DNA of 64,000 nucleotides from Rhodosorus marinus CCMP1338 (GCA_029953675.1 JAMWBK010000008.1:1426001-1490000); one strand, 5' to 3'; shown: positions 6,401 through 63,519, counted from the stretch's first letter. Numbers and translations are program-made. Notes: generated from the sequence alone by a model not told the origin.

Positions 6401-6572
6401 GATGAGGAGGGGGAGGAGAAGTGGTTGGGGATGTTTAGGTGGTTTGAGAGGATGGGATGGATGGATAGGGAGGAGAAGGATGTTAGTGTTTGTGTGGTCA
6501 GGTTGGAGGGTAGTTGGATTAGATAAGGAAGACTGAGGCCTTGGGGTGATCCCTTTTTTTTGGGGGGGGGGG

Positions 6573-7241
6573 ATGGGAAGGATGATGATGAGTAAGGTAG
6601 TTGAGATGTGGGAGTATATGACTCCGTTTGAGAGGCATGATTATTTTAATATTTTGACTTTGACACCGGTGTCTGTGATGTGTGTGCTGGCTATTGAGCG
6701 GGCGGAATTGCGGCGCTTGTTGTTTTATTGTTTCGCGGTGTATACTTTGGCCGACTGTGGTTGGATTTTGGCAGCGCCGAAGAGCGTGAAGGACACCTCG
6801 GGAATTCTGCTGCACCATGCTCTTGCGCTTTTGTTGCTTGTCGTCCCGATTTTGTACCCCGAGTACAGTTTTTATGGGACGATTACACTGTCAGTAGAGC
6901 TGAATACGTGGTTGCTAATAACCAAGAGGCACGTATTCTGGAGACCTCTCAGGCTCGTTCTCGACGCTCTTTTCTACGTCAGCTGGGTGGTCATTCGCCT
7001 TATCTTCTACCCCTATTTATTGAGCAGATTCGTGCTGCGCGCCATGGAGAAGCTGGAGCAGCAGATATATACTCATCCTGTTCTACTGGTACCTGTCTAC
7101 ATGTTCATTCTGTGCTTCATGCAATATAAATGGACCTGGGAGATTGTGAAGAAGAATATAATCGGAAGGCCGCAATCTACTCAGCGCAAGGCCAGCTTAG
7201 CGAAAAGCGGAGCTGAGCAATATAACTTGCGTCCAAGATGA
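6573..7241 (+). CDS. TLC-domain membrane protein, paralog 2
   Basis: Collinear with paralog 1: TPFERHD.FNI, PKSVKD..GI..HH, E.NTWLL.TKRHV.W.PLRL, FY.SWV.IRL..YP. First ATG is at 6573; the true start may be a downstream ATG. Confidence 0.8.
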   Translation: MGRMMMSKVVEMWEYMTPFERHDYFNILTLTPVSVMCVLAIERAELRRLLFYCFAVYTLADCGWILAAPKSVKDTSGILLHHALALLLLVVPILYPEYSFYGTITLSVELNTWLLITKRHVFWRPLRLVLDALFYVSWVVIRLIFYPYLLSRFVLRAMEKLEQQIYTHPVLLVPVYMFILCFMQYKWTWEIVKKNIIGRPQSTQRKASLAKSGAEQYNLRPR

Positions 7242-25340: not shown

Positions 25341-25475
25341 CTTGCAGCTGCTAGTTAGTGGCACTCCAAAATCCTCTGCAGCTTCTGAACATCATTAGTT
25401 TTGGCCTCTCATCATTCTATCAACGTCTGCAGAATCATCAGGGCAACAGCGGCAGCACTACAAAACAAAAACGAA

Positions 25476-25549
25476 TACCATTGCCGAGGCTCGAACTCGG
25501 GACCTCTAGCATGTGAGGCTAGCGCTCTAACCAACTGAGCTACAACGGC
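25476..25549 (-). tRNA. tRNA-Val(CAC)
   Basis: GCCGTTGTAGCTCAGTTGGTTAGAGCGCTAGCCTCACATGCTAGAGGTCCCGAGTTCGAGCCTCGGCAATGGTA. Acceptor stem GCCGTTG/CAATGGT, anticodon stem CTAGC/GCTAG around loop CTCACAT, T-arm CCGAG-TTCGAGC-CTCGG, followed by T-tracts. Confidence 0.96.
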
Positions 25550-26448
25550 ACTATCATATACTGAAATAAATGGTAAAAATATATACAATTCTTCATCGAA
25601 ACAAATGGTAATAATATACACAATTCTTCATCAAGGCCTGTTGGCTTCTCATTCACCCCTTTGCCTTGGGCGAAAAGAACTTGTGAAAGGTTGTAAGTTA
25701 TATTTTAATATTTTTATTTTGAATTGGAGGTTGTTCGTCAAGGGGTTAAGGAACAGATTAGTTTGGGAGTTGCGGTTCGGCGAAATTGTTGACCTCGGAA
25801 GGGATTTGTGCTTGAGCGTGCTGATGGAGCTTGTTCGAAGGGATAGGGTAAAAATCCCATCCCTACCTGTTGAAAGTACTTAACTAAGTTCGTCAGATCA
25901 CTTGCTGCAAGCCCTAGAGAACACGTTTGTCCTAGAGAGCGCTGAGGTGGTGTCGAGAAGAGTGGAAAAGACGAACTGATAGAGACGTACATCTGGTGTC
26001 CTCTTACCAACCGCTTTGTCCTACTGGATCGAGTTACCGACTTACACCGATTGTAGAACGTGAAGGAAACGGGGTTAAACCGGACAGCAGAAAACGTACA
26101 TGGTTCCATCATGGTATAAAGACTTAATATTATTAGTTCTCATATTCGAATAGTTTGTTTCATAGTCCAGTCAGTACTGGGAAACAAACGACGGCGACAG
26201 AGAATAATGCCTACATAGCTTCGTCAATCCGCTAAACTCCAAACTTGGAACTCGAGCTCGCGAGTGCAATCCCCAGGAACTTTTTCCGTACTAAACGTAA
26301 GTGTCTATGCTCAAGACCTTTTCCTTTGGGCGCTTTGAGTGTGCGTACAAACAGAGCCAAAAACCGATCCCATGCATACGGCTCCAGAACTTGCTGAAAC
26401 TGGGTATTCAGAGGGAAAAATCTGGACCCCAACGGCACACAATTCGGC

Positions 26449-27943: not shown

Positions 27944-30590
27944 ATGAGCTCTGATTCAGTGGATTCCGGGATTGAGATCGATGAGATCGTGTCGGCTTTC
28001 AAAACCTCGGTGGTTGTGAGGGACAGGAAGCATATGCTGAAGACGTATAAGAAGTGTTTCGTTGGTTCTGAGGCTGTTGATGTGCTGGTGAAGAAGGATA
28101 TCGTTTCCAACAGAAAAGATGCTGTTGCCGTTGGCCAGGTGATGCTTGCCGAGGGGATCTTTCACCATGTGCTGCGGGAACATCAGTTCGAGGATGCCAA
28201 GCTGTTCTACCAGTTTACTGAAGGGCATGGTGAAAAGGTGACCAAGGTACAGGTGAATTGTAATACCAAGCCTCTTTTGGGGGGGTTAGCTGTTGAAAGG
28301 TTTCTCGCTTAACGGAGCAAACCCTACTTTGTACTTGTACAGGACGGCTCAAAGGTCTCGTGGTCTGACTTTATCAGGCCAGGTATGTGATGCCCTCCTC
28401 CTCTACTTACCTATTGGCGTGCATCGAGAACTGAAGGTCGATTGTTCATTGGCTACTGTTCTTCAGTTACCAAGGAGACGGACGACTCACTGCAACCAGC
28501 AATGCCTGCTTCCGCGGCCACGCCAGAAATCGATTTCAATATTTCCGAACAGCTTGCCCCTCTAGACGAGCACAACCTGCGATTGCTTGACAGTGTACAC
28601 CCTTCGGCATGGCAAGATCCGAAGGCCAAACCGAAATACCATATGGTAGTTATCGGTAGGCGATAGCATAACTTGGCTGGGACCTAAAGTCGCTATATGG
28701 ACCGCACAACTCATGAGTACTTGTTGCCTGCAGGTGCTGGAACTGGAGGACTCGTCACGGCGGCCGGCTCTGCCGGTGTTGGAGCTCGTGTGGCAATGAT
28801 TGAGAAGAATCTCCTCGGCGGCGACTGCCTCAACTACGGATGCGTTCCGTCCAAGGCTCTGATCTCTGCTGCCAAGGCTTATTATGCTGTAACAAACCAA
28901 AAGGGTCTGACCGAGATGGGCATTACCGTTGAGGGAGCGACGATTGACTTTGGGAAGGTGATGGAGCGGTTGAGAAGACTTCGTGCAGGTAGGAGAAAGG
29001 TCTACACTCAACTTCTTCGTTAGCTACACTCGGGAGTCATGTTCTGAGGAGCTTGTATTCGTTGGACAATGTAGATATCGCGCACAACGATTCCGCTGAG
29101 AGATTCGCGTCGAAGCTTGGTGTTGACGTGTACCTCGGTCACGCCAAATTCTTGGACAAGAATACTGTGGAGGTGAACGGTCAGAAGCTGACGTTTGCAA
29201 GGTGCACAATTGCAACCGGTGGTTCACCTCGTCTTCCGGACGTGTCCGGTATTAAGGAATTGTTCGAAGCGTACCACAAAAAAGAGGAGGGTGCTCCTGC
29301 CATTGTGACGAACGAGAGCATTTTTAACTTGACGGAGCTACCGCCGAGGTTTGCGGCTATTGGGAACGGTGAGGTTGTCAGAAAACTATTGATTCCAGTA
29401 AGCTTTTAGCCACTGACAACTAGCTTAAATGGGTTCACGTTGTAGGCGCTATCGGTCTCGAGATTGCGCAGTCGATGACGAGGTTTGGCTCCGAAACCAC
29501 AGTGTTTGGTCGCGGCGGAAGAATCATGGGCAAGGAAGACGCGGATATTGCAAAGATACTCCAGGACCAGATGTCATCGGAAGGGACGAATTTTGAGCTG
29601 GGCGTGGAGAAGTACGTTTCTCTGAAGAAGACTGGTCGAACGAACGGGTCCTACCCCGAAATGGAGATGCAGGTATTACTTAAGGGAGGCGAGAGCAAGA
29701 CGTTCTTGTTCGACGCCCTGCTGGTCGCCGCCGGACGAACTCCGAACGTTGGTAGCCTTGATCTTGAAAAAGCGGCAGTCAAATACGATAAGAAAGAGTA
29801 GGTTGCGTTCTGTCCCTCCAGAACTCGCGAGGACGTTGTGAGGCTTTCGCACTTGCTCACTGGTACCGTATCGTTCGTTCGCGTGCATAAACAGGGGAGT
29901 CATTGTGAATGATAGGCTGGAGACCTCATCAAAAGGGATTTTCGCCGTGGGCGACTGCTGCACAGCATACAAGTTCACTCACGTAGCAGACTTCATGGCT
30001 AGAATCGTAATCCGAAACTCGCTCTTCTTCGGCAAGGACAAGTTCTCGAAGCTTATTATTCCCTGGTGCACTTACACGGAGCCGGAGGTGGCCCACGTTG
30101 GCCTGTACGAGCAGGACATCGCAAAGAAAGGCCAAGTCGTTACTGTTCAAAAGGACTTTGCGGACAACGACAGGGCGATCCTGGAGGGAGAAACTGAGGG
30201 TTTCGTTCGGATTCACACACTGAAGGGGTCTGACAAGATCCTCGGTGCGTCCATTGTTGGAGCTAACGCCGGAAATTTGATCAGGTACGGTGCAATATCT
30301 CTGCTGCCCGTTGGGCTCAAATAGCGATGGCTGTCCGCACAATGCGGGCACGTGCACCCAGCTACCAAGAGCCCTTTTCTAAAAGTACCGCCGTTGTTCC
30401 TTCTATGATTTCCAGTGAGCTGACCCTTGCCATGAACGCTGACTACGGCCTTGGATCAATAGCAAGCGTAATTCACCCCTACCCAACGCAAGCAGAGGCA
30501 ATTCGGGCGGCTGGAGATCTGTTGAACAAGAATCGCCTCACACCGACCGTCCGTGCCGTGCTTAGACAGGTTCTCAAATTCCAAAACTGA
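27944..30590 (+). CDS. DEP domain fused to a MerA-like pyridine nucleotide-disulfide oxidoreductase, copy 1
   Basis: Eight exons (27944-28246, 28343-28382, 28467-28655, 28734-28988, 29075-29368, 29446-29797, 29895-30284, 30416-30590) give 665 aa. DEP: KCFVGSEAVDVL...GQVMLAEGIFHHVLREHQFEDAKLFYQF. FAD site VVIGAGTGG, redox disulfide GGDCLNYGCVPSK, NAD(P)H site IGNGAIGLE, GRTPN, IFAVGDC and C-terminal IHPYPTQAE. Confidence 0.9.
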
Positions 30591-31173
30591 CTTGACTGAA
30601 AAATTGCAGCATAGAGAGAAAATTAAGTACTATTTTTTTGAAGAACCGCAGCCTGATTTCATACCGGATGGGAATCGCAAGGCCCATGTCTCCAACCCAA
30701 GTTCGATGACTGGGAGTAGAAGCACTTAGGAAAGGTCATCTTCCCCACAGCATGTTTCCAGAATTTATGAGTCCGAGGCAAGCTGGTACTTGTGTTCACA
30801 CTTTGAAAAGCTTGTAACAAATTACCTGTCTTGAAAGCGACTGGGCGGAGCGGCGTAGGAAACATGCCACAAATTAGTGATGTTGTACAGCTCCAGTGGA
30901 AGAGTGGTCACTCGCCTATGTGGCTGCTTGTACTACTTCGGTATCCTGTCAGCAGAGAGCAAGCTTTCTCCTAAAAGAACTTTCGTTTATATCGAGAGGA
31001 ACCCCTTCATCGGTAGTGGCTCGATGGTCCTTATCATGCAACGAGTACAGTACAGGCTCGAGAGAGGTCGATACCTTGTCGAGCAAGACGATGTCCAACT
31101 TTTTCGTCCAGGATATAAGTCATAATAATGTTGAAACTGAACATGAGGAGCAGGGTCGGTGAACGTCTCCGCT

Positions 31174-31856
31174 CTAGGATGCGTATTTACCATTGATCTT
31201 GCCTACGAGTGTCATATCCTCCGAAACAACCAGCTAGCAGGGGGGGGACGGGGGTCAGTCGTTGAAAACAGGCGTTGGAAAGCAGACGTTTGATAGCTTA
31301 CCATGAGCCTCTCAATGTTTGGGTGCTTTCCTGGGTTTTCCTTGGCATCATCCCACATTTCTGCATAGAGCTCTAGTCCCTACGGGCGGAGTTATGAGAA
31401 AGACACCAGCTTCAGTTTGTCGACTAGTGGTGTCATAAAGCGCAAGGCAAAAAAAACGAACCTCCTGTGCGGCTCGCTTATCGATTATCTTAAACTTCTG
31501 GAAAAGTGCATTATACACCGCAATAGAGCCTCTCTGTCCAGAAACATTCCTAATGACTGCATCCAATTCCCCTCTCCTCACAGCGCGGCGTCCAACTGCC
31601 AGAAGCTCAATCTTCTCTACATCTAAGCTTGCCGGGAAAGATTGAAAGCATCAATCCAGTAAGAACCAAAAGCACAAACGTTCAACGGAAGGCTTCAAAG
31701 TGCCTTGATACTAAAAGCAAAAACAAAAAGCTCACCATCAGAGTCAGGTAGACGATCCAAGTTCGTTCGAAACCGTCGATCCGGTAGGTCGACCCCCATC
31801 CTAGTACAACTTCTCAATCTCTTTGCGTATACGCTACTGGCGCAGACGAATGCCAT
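31174..31856 (-). CDS. DUF2322-like protein with a probable plastid transit peptide
   Basis: Four exons (31856-31736, 31622-31462, 31379-31302, 31233-31174) total 420 nt, 139 aa: MAFVCASS...FRTNLDRLPDSDDVEKIELL...IRNVSGQRGSIAVYNALFQKFKIIDKRAAQEGLELYAEMWDDAKENPGKHPNIERLMLVVSEDMTLVGKINGKYAS. The AAQEGLELYAE...NPGKHPNI.RL signature is recalled as DUF2322. Confidence 0.8.
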
Positions 31857-32589
31857 TCCATAAATGCAACAAAAACGGACCAAGAAGATTTCAATATTCA
31901 ATCCAGCCGAACAAAATTTTGCATCAAAGACGTCCAGAGTAGCTTGGATCCTGCCCTTCTTACCAAGTCTATCGACCGCGCGCCGACCGGCCTCATCGCG
32001 TAAGCTGACTTGTTTACATATCAGTTTCATTCGTTGACGACGGGAAGCGATTTGACAGACTCGCATGCTACGCTTCAGTCCATTTCTATGGATAACTTCT
32101 CGTCTAGATCTTGTTTGAGAGGATGTATTGAGCTTTTCTCAGCAGTTTACTTTTAACTCTTCCTATCCTCATCGCCCAAAGCCGGCTACGGAGATCTGCG
32201 TGCTTACTGGTCTGGTCACCTGGCGCATGATGAAGAAGAAGTATTTGAACAACCCGGATCAACATCTGTTCCTATCGTTGAATACTCTAGCTTTTGTGTG
32301 AACGAGTGAGCCAGGTTCTTCTCAACCGCGTTCGCCCAAAAACCTCTGTCCGGATCGGTGAGCTTTCTCGTTGTGTTGAACTTTGCAAGTTGCAAGTTCG
32401 GAAACATCTCAACCGACTCAAGTACGACGCAACCAGTCCGTTTCTATACTTGGCTGCTCGTCTAGAATTTGGCATGAACATATGAACCAGGCACTTTTCA
32501 GTCGTAGACGCTTAACCTTTCCAGTGCTCATCGCCGAAAACCAGAGCCAACATCAAGGGATCGTGTTGAAAGTCTCCAAAGACGCGAGG

Positions 32590-32930
32590 TTCGCGTGGAT
32601 GTGGCGAGACTGGTTGCCAAAATGAAAACCTCTTACTGAAAGCAACCAGTAATTCAGCTCGATCCCCTCCTCGTTGGAGAAAAGTGACGTCACATACGGA
32701 AAAGCTGGAAAATGGAACAGACCTTTCCTGGTTGAGGAGGTGGACGAGAGAACCAGTGTGGCGCGGCTGGTCGTCGAATGGAAACCTCTCACTGAATGCA
32801 AATGTCTAACCAGTAATTCAACTCGATCCCCTCCTTGCTGGAGAAGAGTATATGAATCCTTTGAGGTACGTCCCAACGGAAAAAGTTGGGACAATGCAAT
32901 GGACCTTCTGGTTGAGAAGGTGAGGCATGG
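32590..32930. repeat. Degenerate tandem duplication (period about 160 bp)
   Basis: tgtggcg.g.ctggt...aaacctct.actgaa...aaccagtaattca.ctcgatcccc...tggaga occurs twice, with aaacctct at about 32625 and 32783. Confidence 0.75.
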
Positions 32931-33119
32931 ATACTACTCTCTCGTTCCTCATTACTTGATCCATTTGCTCTTGTCCTATCCTAAGGAAACTGACCGCAGC
33001 TCAGCTGTCTCCATCGTTAGAAAGACCTAGTGAAAGAGAAGTCCGGGAAAGGTAGTGAGTAGAAGAGCCCTCGTTCATGAGTTGGGACAGTTCGTGGCTG
33101 ACAACTCAACTGAGAGGTA

Positions 33120-33660
33120 AAGCGGATGAGATATCTCTTCTTGTTAAGAGGCTTCTTAGGCGACTACTGGGCAGCGAGTGGAGAGGGAGATAGAGAGAGC
33201 AAGGACTGGTCTGGTGATCGATTGTGAGACTTCTTTGGTGACTGATGAGCAGCGAGTGGAGAGGGAGATCTCTTCTGGCTAGAGAGAGAGAACAAGGACT
33301 GATCGATCTGGTGATCGATTTCCTTATCATTAGATCGATTGTGGGGCTACTTGGGTGACTGATGAGCAGCGAGTGGAGAGGGATATCTCTTCTGGTTAGA
33401 GAGAGAGAGAGCGAGGACTGATCTGGTGATCGATTTCATTATCATTAGATCGATTGTGGAGGCTACTTGAGTGGCTGATGAGCACCGAGTTTAGAGGGAG
33501 ATATCTTCTGATTAGAGAGAGAGAGCGCGAGGACTGATCTGGTGATCGACTGTGAGGCTTCTTGGGTGACTGCAAAGCAGCGAGTGGAGAGGGAGATATC
33601 TTCTGGTTGGAGAGGTCAAGCAGACTTGATCGACCTCACTATCTCTAGATCGATTGTGCG
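33120..33660. repeat. GA-rich satellite-like array of about 5 units (77-116 bp) upstream of reductase copy 2
   Basis: gcagcgagtggagaggga(g)at...agagagagag...aggactg(atc)tggtgatcga recurs near 33171, 33249, 33366, 33482 and 33578. Confidence 0.9.
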
Positions 33661-33805
33661 GATTCTCGCGGGGGTGGAGGGGGGATGGTGACATTGTCTT
33701 GGTTCTTAAGAGAGGTTTGAGGAGGATCTGGTTGAAATGGGATTTGTTGGAGGTGTATTTGGGATTGGGAACAGGACTGACAGGAGAAGAAGAGTTTGTC
33801 CTGGT

Positions 33806-36800
33806 ATGAAAGGGACTGGTCCTGGAAATGGATTTGAATCTGTGGAATCGGGAGTCAAGCTCGATGAGATTGTCTCGTCGTTCAAGTCTATGGTGGAACT
33901 GAGGGACCGCAGCTACATGCTGAAGATGTACCAGAACTGTTTCGTTGGGTCTGATGCTGTGGATACCCTGATTGAGAAGGGATTTGTCACGAACAGGAAG
34001 GATGCGGTTACGGTTTGTCAAATGATGCTTACAGAGGGAATTTTCCACCACGTCTTGCGCGAACATCAGTTCAAAGATGCTAAACTGTTCTATCAGTTCA
34101 CGGAAGGCCATGGAGAGAAACTCGTCAGGGTAGGGTTGATGTCCTTAGAGCCTCAAATCTCGACTTTCTGCAGCATCTAACGGCTTCGGAAAGCCCCGCT
34201 TCTTTCCATTCCGACCGCTTCTTATAGGAAGGTTCAAAAGTATCCTGGTCGGATTTCATCAAGCCAGGTGAATCAGATCAAAAACTCCTCACCTCTGTCT
34301 TTCCAGAATCATATTGAAATCCCAGGCTCCATCCGTCTGCCCAAAAAAACACACCTTCTGTCTTGTTCCGATCAGAGACGATGGAAATCGACGATTCTCT
34401 TCAACCCGCCATGCCCGTGTCTTCAGAAACCCCGGAGATAACCCAAGACTTACCTCAGACCGATCTCAATATATCCGGACAGCTTTATCCACTGGATGAA
34501 TACAACTTGAGGCTTCTTGACAACACCCATCCGTCGGCATGGCAAGATCCACAGAACAAACGAAAGTATCAGATGCTCGTTATCGGTAAGGTTTATGTGG
34601 AACCCTCCTCGACTCTTGAGTAACTATTGGATGCCATGCAATAGCTTCAGCTCAACTTGGGATGCTTGGAATAGCTTCAGCTCTTGGACGAAAGAGCTTA
34701 GAGCTTTCTTGACCCGGGGGGGCGGATTCAAATTCAGTTTCAACAACCTGAATTTGTCAAGCACGATCGGATAGTAGATTGTTATCTCTGGTTTCATGAA
34801 GACATGCGTCGTGTCGTACTATACACACTACGAATATCTTCTGGTTCCGAATGAAGAATGTATCTGCAGAGGTTTCAACAGATGGGGACTGGATGCCATG
34901 ACTTACTGCCATCCTGCGGAGAGTCATGGCATCCGGTCGTCTGCATCTGCTAAGTTCTTATTGCCGGCTTCCGAGAACTATGACTTACCAACACTAGCAC
35001 CAGAGTGTTTGTCTGAAGGTCTTTTGGTGTTGACTGTTTGTTTATAGGTGGTGGAACTGGAGGACTTGTCGCTGCCGCTGGATCGGCTGGTGTGGGAGCT
35101 CGTGTAGCGATGATCGAGAAGAATCTGCTTGGTGGAGACTGCCTCAACTTTGGATGCGTTCCCTCCAAGGCTCTTATATCTGCGGCCAAGAGATACCACG
35201 CCGTGACAAATGATCAGTCGCTGAGCGAATTCGGAATTTCTGTAGAGGGTGCCAAGATCGACTTTGGAAAAGTCATGGAGCGGCTTCGGAGACTCCGCGC
35301 AGGTAGGAATGCTCTCCGCCTTGTGCTTGTACACAAACCATGAGCTTACGGAACCCCCACTCCCCCGCCCCGTCATTTAGACATCTCCGTCAATGATTCC
35401 GCGGAGAGATTCGCGTCCAAGCTCGGGGTGGACGTGTACCTCGGAGAGGCAAAGTTCATTGACAAGAACACAGTGGAAGTCAATGGTCAGAAGCTCACTT
35501 TTGCAAAGTGTACAATCGCGACCGGTGGGGCTCCTCGTCTACCAGACCTATCGGGCATCAAGGAACTCTTCGAAGCATACCATAGGAAAGAACCTGAAGC
35601 ACCAACCATCGTGACGAACGAGAGCATTTTCAACCTGACAGAGCTGCCGAAGAGGTTTGCAGTGATAGGAAACGGTAGGATAAGCAGCTCTTGCTAGTAG
35701 GAAAAGACGTCTGCTGAACTTGAAGAGCTTCCGTCTTAGGGGCTGTTGGCATGGAACTTGCTCAGTCAATGACTCGGTTTGGGTCCGAGGTGACTGTGTT
35801 TGGTCGAAGCCGTAGAATCATGGGGAAGGAAGATGCGGACATCGCGAAGATACTGGAGGACAGGATGACATCGGAAGGTACCACGTTCCAACTGAGCGTG
35901 GAGAAGTATGTCAGCCTGAAGAAGACCGGTGTGAAGAATGGATCTTTCATGGAAATGGAGATGGAGGTTGTACTTGAGGGAGGGGAGCCCAAGACGTTTG
36001 TTATCGATACTCTGCTTGTAGCGGCGGGGAGAACTCCCAACGTGAGCAGCCTGGATCTGGAAAACGCTGGCGTCAAGTACGACAGGAAAGAGTAGGTTTT
36101 GTGGAACCGCATGGTGTTGCCCTAAGCGATGCGTTGAGGTTTGTAACTGATTCGTATGGATTTGATCTCCATCTGCAGGGGAATTATTGTTAGTGACGGG
36201 CTGGAGACAAGTACGAAGGGCATTTTCGCTGTCGGAGACTGTTGTTCAGCGTACAAGTTCACTCATGTGGCCGACTTCATGGCGAGACTCGTTGTGCGCA
36301 ATGCGTTGTTCTTCGGAAAGGACAAGTTTTCTCGCCTGATTATTCCCTGGTGTACTTACACTGAGCCGGAGATTGCTCACGTTGGTCTTTACGAGAAGGA
36401 TATCTCGGAGAAAGGTGAAGTGGTTACGGTGCAGAAGAACTTTGCGGACAATGACAGGGCCATCCTGGACGGAGAAACAGAAGGGTTCGTCCGGATTCAC
36501 ACGCTGAAGGGATCGGACAAGATCCTAGGAGCGTCGATTGTTGGTGCCAATGCTGGAGACTTGATCAGGTACAGAAACAAGCAACCGATGACCAGGCTCT
36601 CCACTTGCAACTTCACGTTTACACATGCTTTTCTGTTTATCCTTTTGGCAGTGAGCTAACTCTTGCCATGAACGCCGACTATGGCCTCGGATCTGTTGCG
36701 AGCGTGATTCACCCTTACCCGACTCGGGCGGATGCGATTCGGGCATCGGGAGATCTGTTGAACAAAAACCGCCTCACCCCGACCGTCCGTACCATCCTAA

Positions 36801-36826
36801 GGCAGGTTCTGAAACTACAGAACTGA
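33806..36826 (+). CDS. DEP domain fused to a MerA-like pyridine nucleotide-disulfide oxidoreductase, copy 2
   Basis: Eight exons (33806-34129, 34228-34267, 34376-34585, 35048-35302, 35381-35674, 35740-36091, 36179-36568, 36652-36826) give 679 aa, with an alternative ATG at 33737. All 7 intron positions and phases match copy 1. Motifs GGDCLNFGCVPSK, IGNGAVGME and IHPYPTRAD. Confidence 0.9.
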
Positions 36827-46900: not shown

Positions 46901-49139
46901 TAGATGACGGAAGAAACCAGGACACGGATACCCCAGTCCCGAAGCTGAAGATGAAGAAGAGGCACATTCAGAAAATTCGCAATCAGAACCCGGATGATCC
47001 AAATAATTGGTCCTTTTCACACTTGGTTTCTCAAGGGCTCGTCGAATACCTCGACATTGCCGAGGAGGAAACGATGATGATTGCTATGCGAATGAAGGTA
47101 GGCCGAACGCGAATGTTTTTAATTCTGGGACTCGTATAAGCTGGTTCTTGCGGCTTACATCGGTATCGTCATTTTCTAGGATCTGGGAAACACACGCGCT
47201 GTTGCGCGCTACACCCACTGCGAGGTTCATCCGTCCCTGATTCTCGGAGTATGTGGCTCTATTATTCCGTTTCCTGATCACAACCAGTCGCCCCGAAATA
47301 CGTATCAATCTGCTATGGGCAAGCAAGCCATGGGATTGTATATTACAAACTACGCCCTTAGAATGGATACGATGGCGCACGTGCTTTTCTATCCACAAAA
47401 GCCCTTGGTAGGGACCAGGGCAATGGAGCATCTCAAGTTCCGCTCGGTGCCCTCTGGGATAAACGCCATCGTAGCGATTGCCTGCTACTCGGGCTACAAT
47501 CAGGTAACCTTACTAACAAACTTCCAGCATTCTTGAAAGCTTCTCAGCGTTCAGCAGACCTGCTAACGCTGCACTTGCCGATTACGTTCTACAGGAAGAC
47601 TCCGTGATTATGTGCCAGAGCGCGGTTGACCGTGGTCTGTTTCGGTCGGTCTATTTCCGGGCGTTCTCCGAAGAGGAGAAAAGACGATTCGGAGGTGGAA
47701 CCGAAGTCTTCGAGGTACGGCTGCAACAGTGTGATTGGTTCGTTCTGTCGCTGTTCTTACTCACCGTGTTCTACCGCCGTTTTGTGTGTTTTCCAGAAAC
47801 CGAATCCGCGGGAATGCGTGGGAACCAAACCCGGATCGTACGATAAGCTTGATGAAGACGGCTTAGTATCGGAGGGCACGAGAATATCAGGCTTGGACAT
47901 ATTGGTCGGCAAAACGATCGGGTTGGCACCTCCTCCTGGTGTTGAGGCCAACGACGAGGAGAACATGGTGCCGCTTGTGGGAGGAAAAACGAAGAAGGAC
48001 ATGTCGGTTGGGGCCAAGGTCACAGAGAATGGTGTTGTTGACAAGGTGATGATGACTGTGAATGACAGTGGAAGTCGCTTCGTGAAGATTCGACTACGAT
48101 CAATTCGGGTACCACAGATTGGTGACAAGTTCGCAAGTCGACATGGACAGAAGGGAACTGTGGGAATCACGTATCGTCAGGAAGATATGCCGTTCAGTGC
48201 GGACGGCATTGTTCCGGATATTATCGTAAACCCTCACGCCATTCCTTCGCGAATGACCATTGGCCATCTCATTGAATGCCTTCTTTCGAAAGTGAGTTTG
48301 GGCCCATGAAAATCGTGCACCGGGAAGCAGCAAGCGTTTGGCAAGGAGCTGTGGCCAGATCCATTTGCCGACTAATGGTTATTGTTGACGTTTTCCATGC
48401 CACTCTTTCAGGTCTCAGCGATCAAGGGCGTAGAAGGCGATGCAACACCTTTCACGGACACAACGGTGGAAGGAATATCGGCTCAGCTCCAAGCGAACGG
48501 ATACCAGCTACGAGGATGGGAGATGATGAGGAACGGTCACACAGGCCGGCCTCTCGAGGCACAGATTTTCCTTGGACCTACTTATTATCAGCGATTGAAG
48601 CATATGGTCGAGGACAAGATCCATTCACGGTCGAACGGTCCTGTCACGATGCTTACCAAACAGCCTTTGGAGGTTTGTCAAAACTCCTTTGTCAATTTTT
48701 TCCCACGCGATTGGGCGGCAGGTCCTAATAGTTTTTTTCAAATTCACGCTATCCTAGGGTCGTTCAAAAGGTGGTGGTCTTCGTTTTGGGGAAATGGAAA
48801 GAGATTGTATGATCTCTCACGGCGCCGCGGCGTTCCTGAAGGAGCGACTTATGGATCATTCGGACGCCTACAGAGTACATGTGTGCAATATTTGCGGCTT
48901 GATTGCTATAGCAAACTTGAAAAACAACCAGTTCCAGTGCCGAGGGTGCTCAAATACGACTGAGGTAAGCCCGCAATGGTACTCGAACACACAGCAACGG
49001 TGTTTTTGCTCACCTGTGGTATCCACCTTGTCGGGGTTAATGTCCTCAGATCTCACAGATTCAGTTGCCGTATGCTTCGAAGCTCCTTTTCCAGGAGCTG
49101 ATGTCGATGGGAATTGCTCCAAGAATGATGGTGTCATAA
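43988..49139 (+). CDS. RPB2: RNA polymerase II second-largest subunit
   Basis: [106 protein letters not shown] and [10 protein letters not shown]. About 16 GT-AG introns inferred. Confidence 0.98.
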
Positions 49140-49400: not shown

Positions 49401-50414
49401 TCACCTGCCCTGGAAAACAGGCCGGCGCTTTTCGTTGAACGCCCGCACTCCTTCGGCTCTGTCCAGTGTATGAAGCGTTTCAGCGTAGAGTTGGCCCTCC
49501 CATTCCAGTCCGTCCCCGATGCTTCTATCCAATCCTTCGTCGATGGCCCTCTTGGCGAGGCTGATCGCGAGCGGTGCACACTTTAAAATGTCGCTCGTAA
49601 AAGATTTGGCAGCTGCCACCACGTCCTCAGCGTCGTCGACCTTGTCAATTCTATATCATCCAAGCAAAGCAGTAAGCCTCAGAAATGCTTAGTTCCTAGC
49701 GTGCTCCCCTTTGGACGCTGCGTCTGGAGCATAAACTTACAATCCTATCTCCAAGGCTTCCCCTGCTGATACTCGTCGCCCGGTAAAAATCAACTCCTTC
49801 GCCCGTGAGGGTCCAATCAGACGTGAAAGTCTTTGGGTCCCGCCCGCACCAGGGATGATCCCAAGTTTGCACTCCGGAAATCCGATAACGGTTCGTTGCG
49901 AGGCGATTCTGAAGTCACAAGCAAGGGCCAGCTCGGCTCCACCGCCGAGAGCCGGACCATCCATCGCTGCTACTGTCGGAACCCTACATTTTGACAGCGC
50001 GTCGAGATTGGTGCGGAGCGTGTTCACAGTATCTCCCTGTTGCTCCAAGGTGAGCTTTGCCCGCTCCTTGAGGTCTGCTCCAGCACAGAAAACTCCGTCC
50101 ACCAAGGATTGTATGACCACAACCCTGATTCCAGGGCTGTCGTTTAGCAGATTCACGGCATCCCTCAGTCTCCCAATCACCTCTCTAGAGAGAGCGTTCC
50201 GAGTACTCGCGTTTTCTAGTGAAATAGAAGCGATACCACTTTCACTTCCAGAGTGCTCCCCAACCCATAACTTGGAACCTCGATCGAACAAAGAATCGTT
50301 CGCACTCGTTGCTTTTAACAGCTCCTGCTTGTTGTCAGTCTTCACTCCCCTCAGATTCTTTAGACCTCTCCCAAACGCTCTTCTGCGTTCGATAAGAGCC
50401 GACGTCCTATTCAT
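49401..50414 (-). CDS. Enoyl-CoA hydratase/isomerase, AUH-like (methylglutaconyl-CoA hydratase type), probably mitochondrial
   Basis: Two exons (50414-49741, 49650-49401) give 307 aa. VFCAGADLKER, ALGGGAELALACDFR, FPECKLGIIPGAGGTQRLSRLIG and EGVRAFNEKRRPVFQGR. Confidence 0.9.
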
Positions 50415-54471: not shown

Positions 54472-56072
54472 ATGGTGAAGTTGACTTCGTTCGACTTTTT
54501 TCGTAAGCTCCCGCGAGAGTACACATATGGAACTGCATCGGGAGGGTTTTTGTCTATACTGGTTTTGGTGATTGTCCCGATGTTGATTTTCTTCGAGACG
54601 CTAACATTTCTGAGCGGGGAGATCCAGACGGACATCGTCATTGATCCAAACAGCGAGGAGAATCTGAGAATTAATTTCAACGTGACGATGCTGGGACTGC
54701 CGTGTCAATTCACGGAAATCGACGTTTACAATTTCTTCGGTGCCAAACGGCTGGACATCGAGAAGGACATCCAGAAAGCAGTGGTCACAGGAGAAATGGG
54801 GGAAAAATTCTTGCATTACCACTATGAGGTTCCCAGACCACAGGTCGACAATCCATCGAGGGCAGCCAAGACTTTAGTGCCGCCAGGATTTGAGGTGAAG
54901 TCCCTAGGCGAGGACAACTTTACCCAGACCCTACAAGCGGACAAGTTCGCGTTTGTGAACTTTCACGCTGGATGGTGCCATTGGTGCAGAGAACTTCAAC
55001 CAATATGGAAGTCCTTCGCGGTGGCTGTCGATGAGAAGGGCATGAACGTTAACGTATACAACGTGCATTGTCCGGACCACCCGCAGATTTGCGGCACCGA
55101 GCAGAAAATTGCTGGATATCCGACTTTGAGGTGCGTTGGTTTCGCTTTTAAAGCGCTAAGCGTCCAGCCTAGGATTACTCTCCTGGGCCGACCACAGACA
55201 AATCAACATTCCAAGCTCAATCTTTACTTTCGCATGTCTTCCACTGTATTCCGCCCAGAATGTTTCATCAAGGAACTGCACTGCATCCCGATTTTCAGTA
55301 CCAGAGGACAGAAGATGTCCTCCTAAAGTATGTTGAGAAGGTCATTATTGACTCTCACGATGGGCCTCCAACTCGCGCTGAGAAACCGCGCGCAGTCGCT
55401 GCAGTTCGCGAACATGCTGAAGAAGGATGTAATGTGGCTGGAACCCTGTACGTCAAGCGTGTTCCCGGGAATTTTGTCGTGCTCGCCAATTCGCGAGATC
55501 ATAACTTTGATCCAAAGGGGACAAACACCACTCATGTAGTGCATCACCTAACGTTCGGTGATCAACTCACACCGTCTCAACTCAAGCAGATACCGAAGAA
55601 CGCCCGACATGACATTGATCCATTTCAGAAGGAGTGAGCACGCACACCAAGAGCCAGCGTCCAGGTAGTTGCAAAGGTGAACCCAACGACATTTGTGCTG
55701 AATTTGTTTTCACTCGCGCTTTGCTAAAGGTTATTCTCGAGCCCAGCGGAGCACACGTCGCACGAACATTACATAAAGCTCGTGAGCACATTCTACCGGC
55801 TAGGAAAGTTTGGGTCGTCCGAGGTCCTTGGCTATCGGATTACTGCTTCAAATCACTTCTACGATAGCGAGCCTAGCGTTCCCGATGTCAAGTTCTCGTA
55901 CGACATGTCCCCAACCGCAGCTGTAGTGACCCGAGGGGGTCGCCGATGGTACGAGTTTTTAACGAATCTGTTTGCCATTATCGGCGGGTTTTACGTTGTC
56001 ATGGAGTTGACTGATGGACTATTTTACAAAGCAAAGCAAGCGATCAAGACCGCCTCAGGCAAAAAGTCTTGA
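54472..56072 (+). CDS. ERGIC/Erv41-Erv46-like protein with an inserted thioredoxin domain (PDI-C / PDIL5 type)
   Basis: Exons 54472-55130, 55259-55633 and 55730-56072. DFFRKLPRE, TM1, LRINFNVTMLGLPC, Trx FVNFHAGWCHWC, EGCNVAGTLYVKRVPGN, HEHYIKLVST, FSYDMSP and TM2 FLTNLFAIIGG. Confidence 0.9.
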
Positions 56073-56679: not shown

Positions 56680-57828
56680 TCAGTCCGCAACATCCTGCAG
56701 ACCCAAAGCCCTGAAGAACTGAACGAACTGTACACCGCCATAGAGGTTGTTCGCAAAGCGTATCGCGATAATCAACGCTTTCAGTGCAGCGTCTTGGTCC
56801 TTCAGCAGTCGAGCAAGGCCGAGTTCGATTCCTTCGACCAGCTGGAATCGCAAGTTGGATGAGGACGCCATGAAAAGCCCCCAGCCAAGACTGTTCGGAA
56901 TGACCTCCGGCATCCGTCTGAGGGGCTCGTAATCTGGTTGGAATACTTTCCTCCCCTCAAGCATTCCGAAGACTAGAACCGTTCCAACTATTCCGCACCC
57001 AAAGCCCATTGCCATATACTGAGCCGATACCCACACCACCGAAGCTACCCGCTGCATAAGCGAGTACGAACGTTGAGCGGTATTCGCCTCGAAAAAACTC
57101 GCGGGGAGAGAGTCCAGCAACTTCTTCCATGGCGGGACAGACAGCGACTGCAAGCTTGGAAACGGTACCCTCGCAGCAAGCAACCATACGAACGCGGCTT
57201 CGACTACCGTTCCAATCACCAAATCCGATACAACATACTCGATCTCATCCACGATGTCCTTCCCTCGCTCGATAAACTCCCCAGCCAGAGACGTTCCATT
57301 TCCAATCAGTTCCTGTGCTAGAAGCTTGAAGAAGAACTGCTCGTCGCAGAGAAATCGATCGCGAAAAGGCTTCACCGCCCTTATTAGGAAGCCGAATGTG
57401 CCCGTGTCGAACCTACAAAATGGTTACAAAGACAAACCGAGGAAGATCTTAGTACGCAAGTACGGAGAGAGCAATCTAAGAACAGCTTCAACATACCTAA
57501 GATATGCTTGAAGCTGAGCCGCAGTCATCAGACCCCCCTCTACCGCAAGGACCAGATCCGGGGGTAGTGACTGCACCCTTCGTCCCGCCTCCATCAAAAT
57601 TCCCTTCAACACCTCCGGGGACGCCGGTCCACCGTCTCCATCACCACTACCATCGCCACCACCACCGCCACCACCACCACCATCATTCACATTACCCAAA
57701 CTCCCCCCACTACTATCCGATACAGCCTCTACATTCTCGCTCCTCACCCGACAAATCCGCTGACCTCTACAAACTCTCACACCTCCCACCGCCCTCCTTC
57801 CAAATCCGCTCACTCCAACAAACCCCAT
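56680..57828 (-). CDS. RETICULATA-related (DUF3411) plastid envelope protein
   Basis: MGFV transit-peptide start, Gly-rich tract GGGGGGGGDGSGDGDGG, LPPDLVLAVE, FRDRFLCDEQFFFKL, EFIERG, FFE...YSLMQR and SSNLRFQLVEGIE. Intron at 57496-57413. Alternative ATG at 57858. Confidence 0.9.
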
Positions 57829-59000: not shown

Positions 59001-63426
<4,426 letters not shown>

Positions 63427-63519
63427 TTAAGTTGTTTTAGAACGAAACCTGTCTTCGCCGGTCTCCGCGCAGCTCTTCGAAACGGAGCGTCGCTCAGAGC
63501 ATCGGTTGGAGACATCTAA

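Follow-up and report, generated by a model that had tools for sequence, protein, structure and literature searches.

What does a DEP domain do on a flavoprotein disulfide reductase? The question is raised by two neighbouring genes, here called g1 and g2, in a stretch of 64,000 nucleotides from the red alga Rhodosorus marinus CCMP1338 (GCA_029953675.1 JAMWBK010000008.1:1426001-1490000; hereafter the window, from whose first letter positions are counted). An initial annotation, made from the sequence alone, described both as intact fusions of an N-terminal DEP domain with a reductase resembling mercuric reductase (MerA), and proposed that DEP might link the enzyme to a DUF547/glutaredoxin module, for example in arsenosugar or mercury metabolism at a membrane. 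The fusion genes are confirmed below, and comparative analysis points to another role for the DEP domain. In the reductase family to which g1 and g2 belong, DEP and a membrane protein with a VTT domain (PF09335, TVP38/DedA-like) are nearly mutually exclusive, and we consider this the most useful new result. We put at slightly better than even, roughly 55%, the reading in which g1 and g2 encode reductases dependent on reduced nicotinamide adenine dinucleotide phosphate (NADPH) that are docked by DEP at a membrane or a membrane partner, DEP having replaced the coupling to VTT.

Six-frame translation of the intervals 27.9-30.6 kb and 33.7-36.8 kb gave two sets of coding blocks, colinear and on the plus strand, and gene models were derived by listing in-frame GT-AG junctions and matching g1 against g2. 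Gene g1 (27944..30590, plus strand) is a complete coding sequence of 665 amino acids in 8 exons (27944-28246, 28343-28382, 28467-28655, 28734-28988, 29075-29368, 29446-29797, 29895-30284 and 30416-30590), and g2 (33737..36826, plus strand) is its 8-exon paralogue of 702 amino acids (33737-34129, 34228-34267, 34376-34585, 35048-35302, 35381-35674, 35740-36091, 36179-36568 and 36652-36826), which carries in addition a basic N-terminal extension of about 37 residues. Each intron is GT-AG and neither frame is interrupted; exons 4-8 have the same sizes in the two genes (255/294/352/390/175). Two proteins from a Rhodosorus marinus transcriptome are colinear with them: P0001 (665 aa) shares 96% identity with g1, and P0002 (702 aa) matches g2 at 91% identity, gap-free and with the same N-terminus, MGFVGG, so that the start of g2 is covered. 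The transcript proteins include the peptide of the 40-nt exon 2, an exon easily missed. DEP and reductase are therefore encoded on one mRNA, and the two intact 8-exon genes first described are borne out by junctions, open frames and Pfam domains alike. At the protein level g1 and g2 share 81% identity, with a dN/dS of 0.07 and a saturated dS of about 1.65, and their DNA similarity is restricted to exons; the duplication is therefore old and both copies are under purifying selection. The two genes are old tandem paralogues in a red-algal nuclear genome.

From a leader motif ahead of the flavin adenine dinucleotide (FAD) domain to the C-terminus, both proteins match the NCBIfam model NF004991, 'FAD-containing oxidoreductase' (MerA-like), with 628.5 bits for g1 and 625.2 for g2 against a cut-off of 620. 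The same model gives 759 bits for a bacterial DEP form, 871 for a cyanobacterial DEP-less form and 831 for a fusion with VTT. The bacterial and cyanobacterial reductases of this family (PRK06370.1-3) resemble g1 and g2 over that whole length, at 52-62% identity; they share with them a Cys-x4-Cys redox pair and the motif HPYPT, and likewise have no C-terminal Cys pair. Of 103 sampled members, 98 have HPYPT, and the leader, P.D..N..L...HP..W.(D/N)P in g1 and g2, is the N-terminus of the DEP-less members, so that both motifs typify the subfamily as stated in the initial annotation. The two proteins are class-I flavoprotein disulfide reductases of the NF004991 MerA-like family, which has at least 596 relatives among GTDB species genomes.

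The fusion to DEP is very common. In a search of 5.8 billion proteins, PF00610 accompanies the reductase domains in every one of the best 120 clusters, which are 47-57% identical along their entire length. Among their sources are red algae (Compsopogon, Hildenbrandia, Gracilaria, Agarophyton), diatoms (Skeletonema, Thalassiosira, Seminavis, Nitzschia, Mediolabrus), the green alga [Myrmecia] bisecta, the choanoflagellate Salpingoeca rosetta, and bacteria of the Verrucomicrobiota, Desulfobacterales, Gammaproteobacteria and Myxococcota. Eight of the best 80 GTDB species-genome loci have the DEP domain, on contigs of up to 5.1 Mb and among ordinary bacterial neighbours, and a scan with a DEP-plus-linker alignment confirmed at least 198 relatives among 600 matched metagenome stretches. 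Since the full-length architecture is also bacterial, including on contigs of 2 and 5 Mb, it is not peculiar to eukaryotes. Widespread as it is, it has not been characterised: we found no paper on the fusion, nor any that joins 'DEP domain' with 'mercuric reductase' or, among the 15 best-ranked papers, with a disulfide oxidoreductase. Genes g1 and g2 are thus members of a widespread, database-catalogued DEP-fused variant of the MerA-like reductases for which we found no publication. The DEP-fused clade includes bacteria as well as several supergroups of eukaryotes, and its DEP domains are among the few joined to a small-molecule redox enzyme.

The context of the bacterial relatives gives the main clue to what DEP may do. 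Neighbouring open reading frames (ORFs) were called in the best 80 GTDB loci and clustered by BLASTP, recurrent clusters being named with Pfam and NCBIfam. A VTT-domain membrane protein was found in 45 of these 80 loci, on the same strand and at a median gap of 14 bp. The loci were then re-scored with cluster-derived hidden Markov models (HMMs) on six-frame translations, keeping only those in which the sequence extended at least 1.5 kb upstream. Of 60 DEP-less loci, 49 had a VTT gene immediately ahead of, or fused to, the reductase in the same orientation, versus 2 of 58 DEP-fused loci, the latter comprising 7 GTDB and 51 metagenome loci (Fisher p = 7e-20). Because the metagenome DEP loci are closely related, they are less independent than their number suggests; the contrast is still large. 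DEP-less members start at the leader, directly downstream of a VTT/DedA gene; g1 and g2 have instead a DEP domain and a linker at this position, and fall in a separate clan. Seven long members from these loci are single-ORF fusions of VTT to the reductase, joined exactly at the leader (L018, L024, L038, L051, L053, L057 and L060), so that the same reductase family is fused at the same point as in g1 and g2. A junction of this kind implies coupling of the enzyme to a component of the membrane; the module at the N-terminus of these proteins is VTT, an integral membrane domain, and that of g1 and g2 a soluble DEP domain. TVP38-like DedA proteins of COG0398 have been reported to be fused most often to PF07992 plus PF02852, with function unknown (PMC10127716). 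The exclusion between DEP and VTT/DedA therefore offers a handle both on the role of TVP38-like DedA proteins with a reductase and on DEP outside G-protein signalling.

Phylogenetic trees were computed on reductase-only columns, as a quick tree of 103 rows and a careful one of 62 rows (LG+C20+F+G4), both unrooted or midpoint-drawn. Proteins with and without DEP split at 100/100 support, the DEP-fused proteins forming one clan, and the DEP fusion therefore arose once; VTT, unlike DEP, was fused repeatedly, since its fusions occur in at least four separate places within the DEP-less clan. Eukaryotic members form one clan (95/90, recovered in 98% of bootstrap trees), which is joined at 94/86 by a bacterial DEP clan (n=14, 100/98), and a Myxococcota DEP pair stands nearest to the DEP-less proteins, in the arrangement (Myxococcota DEP, (other bacterial DEP, eukaryotes)) at 94/86. 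With a root placed among the DEP-less proteins, this suggests that the earliest DEP branches were bacterial and that eukaryotes received the gene once; because the trees are unrooted and the DEP domain resembles eukaryotic signalling DEPs, the direction of transfer is only suggested. The paralogues g1 and g2 are sisters, with Compsopogon and one MMETSP sequence as their nearest relatives. In the 103-row tree, diatoms and florideophyte red algae (Hildenbrandia, Gracilaria, Agarophyton) form one clan (SH-aLRT 100) that excludes Rhodosorus and Compsopogon, a grouping that fits inheritance through the red-algal endosymbiont or plastid ancestor. The gene apparently came from bacteria once, or was exchanged with them, and then passed from red algae to diatoms.

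How such an enzyme might work can be sketched from these comparisons. Class-I reductases of this kind are homodimers. Electrons would flow from NADPH to FAD, then to the Cys-x4-Cys pair and finally to the substrate, with a Tyr standing where lipoamide dehydrogenase and glutathione reductase have their acid/base His. The catalytic unit begins at the leader, and the DEP domain, modelled as a winged helix, hangs from it N-terminally by a flexible, disordered linker. As VTT occupies the position of DEP in DEP-less relatives, where it would be either translationally coupled or covalently fused, the enzyme is likely to sit at the cytosolic face of a membrane, and DEP would be an alternative device that docks it to the membrane, or to a membrane protein, in the place of VTT. 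The most likely class of oxidant would be a membrane-handled, thiol-reactive species, either a disulfide or a soft metal(loid), for instance a species of Hg, As or Se, lipoamide and glutathione being set aside.

Several points weigh against DEP-mediated docking in the place of VTT. Mutual exclusion of the two modules could reflect functional divergence rather than substitution, and the 51 metagenome DEP loci, at 60-70% identity in the DEP region, are not independent counts. A VTT gene is found 2.7-5 kb upstream, on either strand, in 8 of these 51 loci, and since such loci retain a distant VTT gene DEP and VTT may cooperate. Membrane docking and catalysis of the DEP-fused members are predictions from sequence, and the preference for NADPH is drawn from alignment only. 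Plain electrostatic binding of lipid by DEP, lastly, is not evident, and the domain may dock a protein.

This last point leads to the strongest rival explanation, in which DEP is a regulatory or protein-docking module, serving a substrate protein, a signalling partner or autoinhibition, and is no membrane anchor; we regard it as possible, although on balance unlikely. The DEP domain is encoded by exon 1, at residues 23-91 in g1 (27944..28246; PF00610, E = 1.2e-22, 80.1 bits) and, behind the N-terminal extension, at residues 53-121 in g2 (33737..34129; E = 2.6e-21, 75.8 bits), against a cut-off of 32.7 bits, both matches spanning positions 2-72 of the 72-position profile. An AlphaFold2 model of P0001, which is 96% identical to g1, was built on 82 homologues (predicted local distance difference test score, pLDDT, 88.8; predicted template-modelling score, pTM, 0.84). 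Residues 12-91 are modelled with confidence as a winged-helix-like fold, with helices at 12-22, 41-50 and 57-69 and strands at 26-30, 33-40, 73-75 and 88-91 (pLDDT 83-95), an order of elements consistent with DEP. The domain is slightly acidic over the 82 homologues (median net charge -3), its beta-hairpin arm alone being basic (median +3), so that the docking target may be a protein rather than bulk anionic lipid. Exon 2, of 40 nt in both genes and in the same phase (28343..28382 in g1, where its peptide is found in transcript P0001; 34228..34267 in g2), encodes a peptide conserved between them, D/EGSKVSWSDFI(R/K)P. In an alignment of 16 DEP-fused proteins, 8 bacterial and 8 eukaryotic, homology spans DEP, post-DEP Trp motif, linker and leader, and the Trp is invariant; such strong conservation of VSW.DF after DEP suggests a specific contact. 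The nearest relatives of the domain are also signalling DEPs: a search of the g1 DEP exon alone against 1.84 billion representatives had as its top matches multi-DEP repeat, RGS, RasGAP, kinase and START proteins at 35-48% identity, a ranking that says little in itself because it is dominated by summed multi-DEP scores.

Against this explanation stands the membrane protein that takes the position of DEP in relatives, as does the general targeting of DEP domains to membrane sites (PMC13621322). The linker, too, fits a tether. In exon 3 (28467..28655 in g1; 34376..34585 in g2) it is followed by the leader, PLDEHNLRLLDSVHPSAWQDP in g1 (28559-28621) and PLDEYNLRLLDNTHPSAWQDP in g2 (34489-34551), which is also the junction in the VTT fusions, and in g1 by the start of the FAD-binding strand. 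The linker has about 20-30 residues, and in the model of P0001 residues 114-133 are predicted to be disordered (pLDDT <50). As an observation on the DEP-only search, its strongest matches (P0241-P0265) have 4-7 tandem DEP domains and, in those checked, no other Pfam domain; P0241, for instance, has 1246 aa and 6 DEP.

The connection to DUF547 and glutaredoxin fared less well. Class IV glutaredoxin-like plant proteins that combine glutaredoxin, DEP and DUF547 do exist, as had been stated, and are uncharacterised (PMC13621322). They resemble g1 and g2 in joining a thiol-redox module to DEP; their redox module is a glutaredoxin, that of g1 and g2 a flavoprotein reductase, and we found no association of the latter family with DUF547. 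This domain is not among the top 25 Pfam families shared by at least two of 278 neighbours (within ~3 kb, 80 bacterial loci), it is absent from three further DEP-fused loci, and neither a glutaredoxin nor a DUF547 architecture occurs among the 10 proteins checked from the DEP-only search. With nothing in these data to tie the plant proteins to the reductase, the proposed link finds no support.

Arsenic genes form a second recurrent element of the neighbourhoods, and they support a rival in which g1 and g2 are reductases of an arsenosugar or arsenolipid pathway, acting at a membrane on, for example, pentavalent methylated arsenic or the thiols of ArsM or ArsS. Among the 80 GTDB loci, ORF clusters identified a fused TIGR04282+TIGR04283 arsenosugar glycosyltransferase in 15, ArsS (TIGR04167) in 8 and an ArsM-like methyltransferase in 7; with HMMs on six-frame translations, the corresponding counts in DEP-less loci are 17/60, 14/60 and 9/60. 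A TIGR04282/3 gene also lies about 2 kb from the DEP-reductase gene in 3 of the 51 DEP-fused metagenome loci (E = 1e-152). Red algae, moreover, are arsenosugar producers. Most DEP-less loci and nearly all DEP-fused ones nevertheless lack these genes, the glycosyltransferase being the only arsenic gene sought that turned up in the latter, and tblastn with 12 members of each cluster found no match to VTT, glycosyltransferase, ArsS or ArsM in the 64-kb window. The clustering with TVP38/DedA, ArsM, ArsS and TIGR04282/TIGR04283 named in the initial annotation is thus real for the DEP-less relatives, with DUF547 removed from the list; the arsenosugar context belongs to those relatives and was largely lost in DEP-fused members. 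We consider a dedicated arsenic reductase improbable.

Of the same low order is our confidence in a bolder proposal that would unite both types of neighbourhood. DEP and VTT/TVP38-DedA might be interchangeable couplers of one reductase, which would be the redox partner of a TVP38-type scramblase or transporter, acting on a metal(loid) or disulfide that is lipid-linked or membrane-delivered. Arsenolipid or arsenosugar intermediates would be examples of such substrates, and the algal DEP would dock the reductase onto a eukaryotic TVP38/TMEM41-type protein. If true, this would reveal a role of prokaryotic age for DEP in the tethering of redox enzymes, and would provide a biochemical context for COG0398 DedA proteins. 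As a separate observation, the interval between the VTT and DEP-reductase genes of the DEP-fused metagenome locus L149 (2177-5389) appears, from its sequence, to encode a patatin-like phospholipase (GGGxxG...GTSAG) and a multi-pass membrane protein, which hints at a lipid context.

A genuine mercuric reductase, recruited to a membrane and detoxifying Hg(II) to Hg(0), is doubtful to a greater degree. The resemblance lies in the reductase core, encoded by exons 4-8 (28734..30590 in g1; 35048..36826 in g2), where Pfam finds Pyr_redox_2 (E = 2e-52 and 4e-57 in g1 and g2) and Pyr_redox_dim (E = 9e-27 and 3e-26). The redox-active Cys-x4-Cys of the FAD domain is present in both proteins, in GGDCLNYGCVPSK and GGDCLNFGCVPSK (CLNYGC at 28826-28843; CLNFGC at 35140-35157), and both Cys are invariant in 82 homologues. 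MerA 5x1y is the best sequence match among solved structures (E = 7e-63), and the modelled core of P0001 superposes on lipoamide dehydrogenase and MerA structures in Foldseek with a target-normalised TM score of ~0.9. In residue-level alignments, the Tyr of HPYPT (30474-30488; 36710-36724) corresponds to Tyr in 5x1y and to the catalytic His in lipoamide dehydrogenase 1ebd, as first read. The segments TVFGRGGR (29499-29522) and TVFGRSRR (35793-35816) align with TLMQRSER of MerA and TILEGAGE of lipoamide dehydrogenase, which indicates an Arg-rich pyridine-nucleotide site of the NADPH type and agrees with the cofactor proposed at the outset. MerA (Tn501; Lysinibacillus 5x1y) hence has in common with g1 and g2 the class-I fold, C-x4-C, the Tyr of the C-terminal motif and the Arg-rich site. 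NCBI, too, labels cyanobacterial relatives and the Salpingoeca orthologue 'mercuric reductase'.

What separates g1 and g2 from MerA is the equipment for handling mercury. MerA has a C-terminal Cys-Cys that hands Hg(II) to the active site, and most have an NmerA domain; g1 and g2 have neither, with no Pfam match to HMA/NmerA and no Cys in their last 40 residues, as had been noted, and none of the 103 family members sampled has CC in its last 15 residues. The MerA model TIGR02053 scores 324.8 (g1) and 337.1 bits (g2), below its cut-off of 454.45, and no mer genes recur in the bacterial neighbourhoods. On the side of mercury stands Slr1849 of Synechocystis, a MerA-resembling NADPH reductase widespread in cyanobacteria (Marteyn et al. 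2013, reviewed in PMC4307280), which is reported to act on Hg(II) and uranyl with NADPH and to be controlled by Grx1 and glutathionylation (PMC4307280). Unlike g1 and g2 it has no DEP domain, and it is probably one of the DEP-less family met here, although its membership in NF004991 could not be confirmed: the best 120 matches to a cyanobacterial member were all Oscillatoriales 'mercuric reductase'. By analogy, the reported reduction of Hg(II) and uranyl by Slr1849 and the arsenosugar neighbourhoods make soft metal(loid)s, or thiol adducts of these, possible substrates of the DEP forms as well; g1 and g2 are candidates for metal(loid) or thiol handling at algal membranes.

An ordinary lipoamide dehydrogenase (E3) or glutathione reductase with an extra domain, suggested by automatic JGI/NCBI names such as 'dihydrolipoyl dehydrogenase' and by the match of the fold to lipoamide dehydrogenase structures, can be dismissed, given scores of 342.8 (g1) and 353.9 bits (g2) on TIGR01350 against a cut-off of 408.8, glutathione reductase models far under their cut-offs (all mycothione and RclA-type models score below theirs as well), the loss of the His-Glu dyad (HxHPT..E) through replacement of the catalytic His by Tyr, and placement in a clan apart, which is strongly supported and marked by distinct leader and tail motifs. 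The family placement made in the initial annotation thus stands. The family is routinely misnamed, and such genes should be called neither MerA nor E3.

Two features of the core vary among members. The residue after the second Rossmann strand depends on the clade, with G-R-x-G-R (NADPH-like) in the DEP forms of eukaryotes, E-x-x-H-G (NADH-like) in many bacterial members that lack DEP and H-K in cyanobacterial members, so that cofactor preference may not be uniform across the family. Behind the FAD-binding GD motif (AVGDCC), g1 has a vicinal Cys-Cys at Cys499-Cys500 (29695-29700) and g2 at Cys536-Cys537. This pair, distinct from the C-terminal one of MerA, is present in g1, g2 and 9 of 18 eukaryotic members sampled; at the same position GD(I/V)C prevails among DEP-less members, and GDVA stands in bacterial DEP forms.

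The paralogues also differ at their 5' ends. The N-terminal extension of g2 (residues 1-38, 33737-33850, plus strand, MGFVGGVFGIGNRTDRRRRVCPG...), absent from g1 and kept in the transcript protein P0002, has 6 K/R against 3 D/E over about 37 aa, and the Gracilaria protein P0017 has a Ser/Arg-rich extension. Both extensions may be organelle-targeting peptides, in which case g1 and g2 may act in different compartments. Elsewhere in the window lie ordinary nuclear genes (6546-7241, 25475-25550, 47626-48309, 49737-50414, 54472-55326, 56680-57375 and 59001-63440), none of them related to metal(loid) metabolism: a TLC-domain protein, a tRNA-Val(CAC) on the minus strand, an RNA polymerase Rpb2 fragment, an enoyl-CoA hydratase, an ERGIC_N+thioredoxin protein, a RETICULATA-like protein and a beta-galactosidase. 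Upstream of g2, with nothing similar at g1, a 116-bp unit is repeated 2.9 times (88% matches) at 33216-33549, about 190 bp before the start codon and thus in the presumptive promoter or 5' region of the gene.

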